This document shows positions 58,587 through 60,461 of a DNA stretch of 64,000 bases, piece by piece. Below the pieces are notes generated by a model that did no database searches, was not told the DNA's origin, and saw nothing but the letters and a program-made list of their open reading frames with translations. The stretch spans positions 146,612 to 210,611 of IMG/VR virus record IMGVR_UViG_3300035181_000357; one strand, given 5' to 3'. Position numbers and translations under genes: made by a program. Each line of letters opens with the position of its first letter. The first letter of the stretch is position 1.

Positions 58587-59300
58587 TTAAGATCGTCCGA
58601 AAACTTCATTAAGTTGCTGACTGACTCGAACAAAAGTAGTTCTCTTAGGGAGTTCTTTAAGACTGTATGCACCAACATAGGTACAAGTGCTACGGATCCC
58701 ACCTAGAATTTGTTGGACAGTTGCTGAGACTGGGCCACGATATTCAACTTCAACAGTCTTACCTTCTGATGCTCGATAATTCGCAACCCCACCAGCATGT
58801 TTGGTCATAGCTGTATCAGAGCTCATCCCATAGAATTGAACGGTATGTCGTATATCATTACCATACTGCTTGATCAGAATCTCATTCATTGGGCAGTCTT
58901 TATTGACGTTCTTGACCTGGGAACTCATGACTTCGTTAGTTTCATACACTCTTGAGACTACTTGTCCACCACCCTCTTCGTGCCCACTGAGCATTCCACC
59001 GAGCATAACAAAGTCAGCGTTTGCTCCGAAGGCTTTAGCCACATCTCCTGGGCAAGTACATCCACCATCTGCCATGATATGACCAGCTAGACCGTGGGCA
59101 GCATCAGCACACTCGATAACAGCAGATAATTGTGGATACCCTACACCAGTTAGTTTACGAGTAGTACATACAGAATTGTGTACTAAAATACCATCTACAT
59201 TATAAGAGTGATCTTCCTCGACTTCTAGATCATACACTGATTCAGTATTCTTTAATTCTATTATGGAATCTATATCAATCAGTTCATAGTTAGATAACAT
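58587..59300 (-). CDS. guaC: GMP reductase C-terminal half fused to C-intein
   Basis: [21 protein letters not shown]|SVCTTR, then [29 protein letters not shown]. Confidence 0.92.
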
Positions 59301-59614
59301 TCTAATTCCTCCATAACACTATTATACTCCTTCGTTTTATTCCTGAAATCATATTCCCATATTATAAATAAACGAATATTATGTTTCCCCGAGAATTCTT
59401 CCTTAAGAAGATCTCTCTGCTTTTTATATCTCTGGATACTATTTAAGGGTTTCAGATTATCCCCGAAGAATCTAGGATTTCCATGCCAATAATCCCCATG
59501 TATTTCTATTAGGACTCTCTTTTCTTTACTACCAAAATCATACTGATATCCACCGATTATTGGACTATATATGAAAGAATATCTATTTAATACCTCTGAA
59601 TCTGGTAGTTGATT
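59279..59614 (-). pseudogene. Startless remnant of Vsr-like (PD-(D/E)xK) homing endonuclease
   Basis: Open frame YQYDF...VLIEIHGDYWHGNP...IWEYD with no start codon after an in-frame TAA. Confidence 0.8.
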
Positions 59615-60461
59615 TTAATAATAGATGGGTATCTTTATCTAATTTATCAGCAGATACCCAATACCCATAATTATGAATATTATCATCTGTCAGAGATTCT
59701 CTATCCAGTTTGTTAACAACATAAAATTCATGATTAGGTGTACATTTGATATTATTTATTTTTAATAAAGTATCTCTGTTCTTAAATTCAAATTTATGTA
59801 ATATCTTCCTAAATCTATTCTGATGAGTCAAGACCATATCATCTAGTTCGATGTCAACAATCCTTTTAAATCCATCTCCAGTTAATACCATAGAATCAGC
59901 TGTAAAACAACCTGGACCAATACCAACTTTAATAACATCAGCACCAGCGAACAACAAAGCCTCTGTGATATCTGGGGTCACTACGTTACCAGCGATTATA
60001 GCTATGTCTGGATTCTCATCACGTAATGTCTTGACTAGGTCCACGAATTTCTGGCTATAACCATTAGCTACATCTAGACATAACCATTTGGTGTATCCAC
60101 CCTGTCTCTTAAATTCCTTGTACTTTAACTGATCTTCTTCAGATGTACCTAGGCTATATACAAAGCTATCGTACATGTTTCTGTATTTAACGTAATTAAA
60201 TACTTTAATCAACTCTTCTACTGAATAGTGTTTGGTCAAGCATGTCATCATACTGAACTCAGCGAGAGCCAGGGCCATCTTAGGTGTCCCTACTCCATCC
60301 ATGTTGGCAGCTACTATTGGAACTCCATGATATTCCTGCTTGGAATTGCGGAGTATATATTTCTTCTGAAGATCCACTTCGTTTCTAGATCCTAGAGATG
60401 ATCTATGTGGGACGAACAGAACGTCCTTAAAATCTAGCTTGATATCGTCGATAATCCTCAT
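59583..60461 (-). CDS. guaC: GMP reductase N-terminal half fused to N-intein
   Basis: DFKDVL, AANMDGVG, DVANGY, AGNV, IKVGIGPG|CFTADSMV...CTPNHEFYV. Confidence 0.92.
   Translation of the reverse strand: MRIIDDIKLDFKDVLFVPHRSSLGSRNEVDLQKKYILRNSKQEYHGVPIVAANMDGVGTPKMALALAEFSMMTCLTKHYSVEELIKVFNYVKYRNMYDSFVYSLGTSEEDQLKYKEFKRQGGYTKWLCLDVANGYSQKFVDLVKTLRDENPDIAIIAGNVVTPDITEALLFAGADVIKVGIGPGCFTADSMVLTGDGFKRIVDIELDDMVLTHQNRFRKILHKFEFKNRDTLLKINNIKCTPNHEFYVVNKLDRESLTDDNIHNYGYWVSADKLDKDTHLLLKSTTRFRGIK

Follow-up and report, generated by a model that had tools for sequence, protein, structure and literature searches.

A fractured guaC gene in a metagenomic phage, with an intein cassette whose endonuclease is midway through loss

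How did a phage gene for guanosine monophosphate (GMP) reductase come to lie in two pieces around a nuclease frame without a start codon, and may the two pieces still yield one enzyme? The question is raised by a guaC locus at positions 58587-60461, minus strand, of a 64,000-nucleotide (nt) stretch of DNA (hereafter the window), which is the final 64 kb of the linear IMG/VR record IMGVR_UViG_3300035181_000357 (210,611 bp, estimated to be 69% complete). Genes in the window include rIIA, a Dda-like helicase, nicotinamide phosphoribosyltransferase, RNA ligase, and tRNA nucleotidyltransferase, indicating a large T4-like phage. An earlier note, made from the letters of this stretch alone, had described the locus as a GMP reductase fractured by a naturally split intein around a dead homing endonuclease. 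In our analysis it is very probable that guaC of this phage was fractured by a mobile split-intein cassette, that the endonuclease of the cassette is decaying, and that the two halves trans-splice.

The two halves and their predicted splicing

The N-terminal half of the enzyme is an open reading frame (ORF) of 292 amino acids at 59583-60461 that ends in its own TAG stop, and the C-terminal half is an adjacent ORF of 237 amino acids at 58587-59300 on the same strand, as are all features of the locus described below. An N-intein closes the upstream ORF, which reads VGIGPG/CFTADS at the junction, and a C-intein opens the downstream one, which reads VHN/SVCTTR. The N-extein (59910-60461; GuaC residues 1-184, ending in VGIGPG) matches PRK05096, the GMP reductase equivalog, over positions 1-198 with 213 bits, and Pfam IMPDH over 9-190. 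The C-extein (58587-59174), which runs from Ser+1 (SVCTTR) with the catalytic Cys at +3 to the stop, matches PRK05096 over positions 183-346 with 275 bits. Both scores are far above those of the IMPDH models (83-93 bits). They are scores of single halves, whereas the cut-off of 397 for PRK05096 and TIGR01305 applies to the whole protein. These profile matches support the assignment of the host enzyme to GuaC-type GMP reductase, in agreement with the two-piece enzyme of the earlier note.

Uninterrupted guaC homologs, with which the N-extein is collinear, were found in 14 IMG/VR phages (L004-L017), all with the loop GIGPGSVCTTR except two that read GIGGGSVCTTR. Compared with these genes, the exteins of the window (GIGPG and SVCTTR) have gained or lost no residue at the break, which abuts exactly on the catalytic loop, two residues ahead of the catalytic Cys (the third residue past the splice site). 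Both the natural split and its position just before this loop had been proposed previously. The catalytic role of the loop Cys is established for the IMPDH/GMPR family. A reasonable inference is that enzyme activity requires trans-splicing.

Elsewhere, the C-extein exceeds the bacterial model by an insertion of some 30 residues at approximately residues 95-135 of the C-half (195 extein residues over 164 model positions), and the TIGR01305 match falls in two stretches. Variable insertions resembling this one are present in some of the uninterrupted phage homologs (L004, L012, L013, and L016).

A word search with the N-intein returned five proteins, and their contigs were examined. The N-intein core (59613-59909, residues 185-283 of the N-half, 99 amino acids) aligns without gaps with the N-inteins of the relatives L018, L021, L023, and L024, with 46 invariant columns including Cys1 (residue 185) and the block B motif T-P-N-H. 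It is followed by nine foreign residues (STTRFRGIK) and the TAG stop at 59583-59612, which are endonuclease-derived DNA read in the wrong frame. Thus, the own stop noted previously is present, and the N-intein part, earlier put at about 105 residues, is 108 in total, 99 of them core. The C-intein (59175-59300) ends in VHN before SVC as noted earlier, with a length of 42 rather than 41 residues when the Met is counted; it scores 28.8 bits with TIGR01443 (cut-off 15.6) and matches Pfam Intein_splicing over residues 8-42. Its last residues are His-Asn, followed by Ser+1. Cys1, TxxH, His-Asn, and Ser+1 are all present in the window and conserved across the family.

The C-half has its own Shine-Dalgarno sequence, GGAGGA at 59307-59312, 6 nt ahead of the ATG and within the 3' end of the endonuclease frame, which confirms the earlier reading; it is kept in the relatives L018 and L025. 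A promoter and terminator scan of the locus found no terminator-like site between the halves, and promoter sites were not more numerous than in shuffles. The two halves would probably be co-transcribed and translated separately. They lie in the same phase in the window and in different phases in L025, and we took the shared phase as a coincidence.

A complex of N-half residues 180-292 and C-half residues 1-50 was modeled together with three controls. The interface score (ipSAE) was 0.77, compared with 0.00 for the best of the three controls, with at least 97% contact agreement between runs and a predicted local distance difference test score (pLDDT) of at least 76 for the partner. In calibration, 51 of 78 solved complexes and 2 of 108 mismatched pairs attained the mark for this score. 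In the model, C-half residues 1-41 touch the N-intein, and the tightest contacts (N-half 279-283 with C-half 6-10) involve the strands beside the split site. A PDB sequence search with the N-intein gave NrdJ-1 alone (E-value 0.31); the PDB contains no IMPDH-1 chain.

The conserved residues and the modeled interface suggest that the N-intein, of about 99 residues, and the C-intein, of 42, would form one Hint fold and trans-splice via Cys1, TxxH, His-Asn, and Ser+1. Ligation of GIGPG to SVCTTR would restore the catalytic-Cys loop in an enzyme of 379 residues, and the split intein may be retained because the enzyme depends on splicing. A different possibility is that the intein halves merely hold the enzyme pieces together non-covalently and that the enzyme works unligated. 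Tight binding is indeed a property of split inteins, and among fractured phage genes that lack inteins some act as two-piece enzymes (Dassa et al. 2009, PMC2677866, Discussion). However, an intein of about 140 residues would then interrupt the catalytic loop just two residues away from its Cys, and mere binding would not demand the family-wide conservation of the four splicing elements. We regard unligated function as highly improbable and trans-splicing as the better account of the two halves.

The endonuclease remnant and its alleles

Between the halves lies a frame of 111 codons, open from stop to stop (59279-59614). It is shifted by +1 relative to the N-half and overlaps it by 32 nt and the C-half by 22 nt. 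The first ATG, GTG, or TTG is codon 101, and between the only Shine-Dalgarno-like element, GAGGT, and the closest ATA there are about 19 nt. When this stretch, with a guanine plus cytosine (GC) content of 31.5%, was shuffled 20000 times, it never stayed open.

Pfam matches of the translated frame were below threshold (Vsr, E-value 0.027; DUF559, 0.055), and homing-endonuclease families of PHROG matched at 7e-10. An AlphaFold model built on the family alignment had a pLDDT of 92. Its best PDB match was the catalytic domain of I-Bth0305I (3r3p; E-value 2.7e-3, probability 1.0, TM scores 0.58/0.65), followed by Escherichia coli Vsr (1cw0 and 1vsr). I-Bth0305I is the prototype of the EDxHD family, with a catalytic domain at residues 167-266 behind an N-terminal NUMOD region (PMC3239194). 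That domain is of the same size as the remnant. The remnant is thus a whole catalytic domain, which agrees with the startless Vsr-like frame described earlier. The fold is Vsr-type with the conserved E, D, H, and D residues, and the remnant retains every position that is invariant among seven members of the family (D-F, E..GD..H, K, D, K, and W-E); the N-terminal NUMOD part and a translatable ORF are missing.

The missing part can be read from relatives with the full arrangement. In L023 and L024, an N-half ending in LLIKR and a stop is followed by a spacer of 64-75 nt, an endonuclease ORF of 322 or 319 amino acids, respectively, and the C-half. These endonucleases have a Cys-rich start, NUMOD3 motifs (1e-9), and then a C-terminal domain, and the remnant is 42-46% identical to only their last 105 residues or so. 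Relative to them, some 210 codons are gone from the window, among them the NUMOD3 DNA-binding part, together with the start codon and the control or intergenic region upstream, so that the 5' loss noted earlier is well founded. A second copy of the remnant domain was not found in the 210-kb record. No intact free-standing endonuclease lies between the halves: about 105 of about 320 residues are left, indicating that the locus is a derived state of the fractured-gene arrangement.

A closely related phage from another Joint Genome Institute (JGI) sample, L025, has 99.2-99.3% identity with the window across 8.5 kb. Both of its guaC halves are intact, and the protein of its C-half is identical to that of the window. 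Its N-half is identical to that of the window as far as STTR and then ends in STTRS, as does that of L018, whereas relatives with an intact endonuclease end in LLIKR. In L025, a piece of 21 nt takes the place of the 221 nt at window positions 59379-59599, which encode the catalytic core of the remnant, and this breaks the remnant frame. Logan contigs of four runs from four studies were compared with the locus, and the public runs containing the locus are sediment and microbial-mat metagenomes. One of the four runs (X1) may be the source of the record itself; contigs of the other three, X2, X3, and X4, carry the window allele and have no differences from the window over both junctions. Run X4 also has a contig with the joint of L025, including the identical 21 letters, and thus both alleles occur in one sample.

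The 21 replacement letters (L025:3809-3829 and X4) are unlike the window, and this allele has the TCC-TAA stop of the distant L018. The deletion allele therefore seems to have arisen in two steps, or through recombination with some other allele, rather than by one simple deletion.

L018 is a more distant phage, in which the flanking exonuclease is 62% and the N-extein 56-58% identical to that of the window. The 5' junction of the window is present there, but an in-frame deletion of 129 nt removes the catalytic motifs (D..E..GD..H). The window, L018, and the L025/X4 allele thus represent three successive states of one cassette. An extra ORF of 114 amino acids lies between the exonuclease gene and guaC in L018 (L018:670-1014) and is absent from the window.

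These contigs also bear on whether the break is an assembly or sequencing artefact; an assembly artefact is one outcome that, in the earlier note, would refute its reading. The record is indeed a metagenome-assembled contig, but the junctions are identical in contigs of three other studies and the same fracture is present in L025 and L018 from other samples. An artefact is therefore barely conceivable, and we treat the fracture as real.

The comparison with intact relatives suggests the following course. The cassette would formerly have carried a free-standing EDxHD (Vsr-like) endonuclease of about 320 residues with a NUMOD3 DNA-binding part in front. A deletion would then have taken the original stop of the N-half, the control region between the genes, and the first 210 or so codons of the endonuclease with its start codon, leaving a catalytic-domain remnant that is probably silent and whose 3' end still supplies the ribosome-binding site and start of the C-half. 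This remnant would then be lost piecemeal in the natural population. The endonuclease is thus caught midway through its loss. The earlier note had seen here the end state of the homing cycle; the locus is instead an intermediate, with a complete catalytic domain kept and shorter alleles in existence (L018, L025, and X4).

A metagenome scan with the N-intein alignment recovered further forms at the same guaC site: the full NUMOD3 and Vsr-like endonuclease (L026 and L029-L032), split halves with a short spacer and no endonuclease (L045 and L039), a Vsr-tail remnant (L042), other inserts (L041 and L044), and contiguous mini-inteins (L028, L035, L040, and L047). The mini-inteins (L028:2501-2926, L035:404-829, L040:2501-2926, and L047:6-263) are single ORFs of about 140 residues that read VHN/SACTTR at the end; they are likely pre-invasion or re-fused forms of the intein of the window. 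A homolog of the split intein, in which a short spacer but no endonuclease separates the halves, is located at L034:2501-2998, about 50 residues past the catalytic loop of guaC and just before DFVMLGG, indicating that the same intein family occupies two sites of one enzyme.

When the phage collection was searched at the DNA level with this locus, only weak guaC matches appeared and no relatives, and a protein-pattern scan of IMG/VR with the whole N-half gave uninterrupted guaC genes only (empty-site references) and no inteins. With the N-intein alignment, the scan of IMG/VR found no close subfamily member with an intact endonuclease; hence the exact deletion junction cannot be mapped on an intact ancestor.

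Selection, cassette history and genomic setting

Selection was examined by comparing the window with L018, unless L025 is named. For the N-intein, the ratio of nonsynonymous to synonymous substitution (dN/dS) is 0.13, differences at the three codon positions are 17/10/30, and the relocation test gives P < 1e-4. For the C-intein, dN/dS is 0.15 and the relocation test gives P = 0.007. Between the window and L025, the C-half has nine synonymous changes and one non-synonymous change. Both intein halves are under purifying selection, and dN/dS values across inteins and exteins range from 0.03 to 0.15. The remnant tail has a dN/dS of 0.24 (NG86) and flat codon-position differences (10/8/14).

Several observations speak against the interpretation of trans-splicing halves around a silent remnant. 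Trans-splicing is inferred, and no RNA run among the public runs contains the locus. The nine-residue foreign tail of the N-intein may affect splicing. The passing score of the complex model may draw on split inteins of solved structure, and it speaks for likeness rather than for binding. The remnant is also less clearly dead than the earlier note has it, as 111 codons are open at 31% GC with all catalytic residues kept. Its tail has 17 changed codons where 21.5 are expected on relocation (P = 0.03, or 0.065 without the C-half overlap), and no stop arose, though 84-88% of simulated substitution sets create one. The dN/dS of 0.24 looked like selection, but with flat codon-position differences and a borderline relocation test, some constraint on the remnant frame is no more than possible.

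One explanation that draws on the first of these points is that the fractured guaC is dead, its halves being unspliced relics, and that the phage uses the host enzyme. GuaC is auxiliary for a phage, and the foreign tail of the N-intein would also fit. On the other hand, three lineages (window, L018, and L025) have kept the two ORFs intact, inteins and exteins are under the purifying selection described above, the residues for splicing and for the catalytic loop are complete, the Shine-Dalgarno sequence of the C-half is conserved, and the predicted interface is strong. A dead gene seems quite unlikely on this evidence, which favors a gene still in use through splicing.

The points that concern the remnant lead to another explanation, in which the nuclease domain is still made, either by a +1 frameshift from the end of the N-half, giving a fusion of N-intein and nuclease, or by non-canonical re-initiation. 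The locus would then be heading to an in-frame EDxHD intein (step IIIa of Dassa et al. 2009) and not to endonuclease loss. A frame open beyond chance that overlaps the N-half at +1, catalytic residues all kept in a well-scored model, the weak constraint and lack of stops relative to L018, and the in-frame nature of the L018 deletion are what one would expect. However, start codons are absent before codon 101, and the only Shine-Dalgarno-like element is the GAGGT some 19 nt away from an ATA. A 99.3% identical phage lacks the catalytic core through a frame-breaking deletion and both alleles coexist in one sample, the L018 deletion takes out the very D..E..GD..H motifs, codon-position differences are flat, and the NUMOD3 DNA-binding part is gone. 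Continued production of the nuclease is thus unlikely, and we prefer a silent remnant. We know of no intein that carries an EDxHD-type endonuclease.

The history of the cassette was examined from base composition and divergence. The cassette has a GC content of 27-32% (27.3% in the N-intein core) and forms a sharp low-GC island at 59175-59909; the exteins have 40-45% and the window as a whole 43.8%. Synonymous divergence from L018 (pS) is 0.54 in the cassette and 0.83 in the exteins. At third positions, identity reaches 0.6-0.8 within the intein, as against 0.15-0.45 in the middle of the exteins, from where it climbs over the last 35 or so extein codons. The lower synonymous divergence of the cassette, together with the GC island, is in keeping with horizontal spread and co-conversion of the flanks. 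In addition, L018 has the same truncation junction, from which we would conclude that the cassette spread once its endonuclease was already shortened. There is a slight chance that the truncated nuclease is translated, for example as a +1 fusion with the N-intein from the 32-nt overlap, or is an intermediate toward an in-frame EDxHD intein. In that reading, the cassette was also exchanged between phage lineages following the truncation, given a common 5' junction beside exteins that have diverged much further. It would then have spread with no endonuclease of its own, perhaps by means of one supplied in trans by related full-length elements.

Some other features of the phage were noted. A free-standing HNH endonuclease ORF (58014-58577, minus strand; HNH_5, 1e-12) begins 10 nt past the stop of the guaC C-half. 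Its GC content, 46.8%, is like that of the host genome and unlike that of the intein cassette, and the stretch is also present in L025 (99.3% identical). The Dda-like helicase (4077-6014), whose match begins at profile position 151, was suspected of being a second fractured gene and proved to be a single piece. About 5.3 kb ahead of the window, a Hint module is located near the C-terminal end of a 2684-residue open frame (G000:C1:141067-141354; loci L050 and L051), with matches to Pfam Hint (9e-14), PT-HINT (1e-11), Intein_splicing (2e-10), and TIGR01445 (29.9 bits). It is a second Hint-type self-processing domain of this phage, and it resembles an autoprocessing Hint at a C-terminus more closely than it does an inserted intein. 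Finally, an ORF of 712 codons with a TTG start (16456-18594, minus strand) is antisense to the entire rIIA gene (16513-18660, plus strand), an unusually long shadow frame for 44% GC.

Comparison with known systems

The architecture and insertion site of this locus are already known, and as a fractured gene of the GuaC type it belongs to the IMPDH-1 insertion class. Dassa et al. (2009, PMC2677866) described fractured genes, among them three IMPDH loci whose endonucleases are of the NUMOD3 and Vsr-like type and a gp41 locus without endonuclease; their model provides for either loss of the endonuclease (step III) or its in-frame fusion (step IIIa). As in IMPDH-1, the insertion lies between Gly and Ser of the loop G-x-G/S-x-C (here GPG/SVC). 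Our understanding of split inteins and of the homing cycle is unchanged by the locus. Its value lies in an unusually clean field snapshot of a predicted step, the loss of the endonuclease from a fractured gene, with three deletion states, two of them in one community.

Like the IMPDH-1, IMPDH-2, and IMPDH-3 loci of Dassa et al., the window has a gene of the IMPDH/GMPR family split into two neighboring ORFs at an identical position in the catalytic loop, an N-intein of about 100 and a C-intein of about 40 residues, Ser+1, and an endonuclease of the NUMOD3 and Vsr-like type whose frame overlaps the start of the C-half. Unlike them, its endonuclease is reduced to a catalytic domain without a start codon, its host scores as GuaC-type and not IMPDH, and its junction is GPG/SVC and not the published native GGG/SIC of IMPDH-1. 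The earlier match to IMPDH-1 therefore stands for architecture and insertion site, whereas sequence identity is modest: by eye, against a table read by optical character recognition, about 36 of 99 N-intein positions are identical without gaps (approximately 36%), and 14 of the last 21 of the C-intein. IMPDH-1 trans-splices fast and orthogonally (Carvajal-Vallejos 2012, as given in a citing paper). The locus adds to this class a natural split-intein pair that is about one-third identical to the engineered one and is a candidate orthogonal, possibly fast, trans-splicing tool.

The remnant resembles I-Bth0305I (3r3p; PMC3239194) in having the size of its isolated catalytic domain and the conserved catalytic residues. 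I-Bth0305I, which resides in a recA group I intron, carries a NUMOD2 DNA-binding region at its N-terminus, whereas the remnant has neither DNA-binding part nor start codon. The mini-inteins of L028, L035, L040, and L047 share with the window the guaC insertion site and homologous N- and C-intein blocks; they are single ORFs with cis splicing, whereas the intein of the window is split by the scar of an endonuclease insertion. The gp41-7 locus (Dassa et al. 2009) is similar to the window in that adjacent split-intein halves persist after endonuclease loss (step III). In the window, by contrast, this loss is partial and polymorphic.

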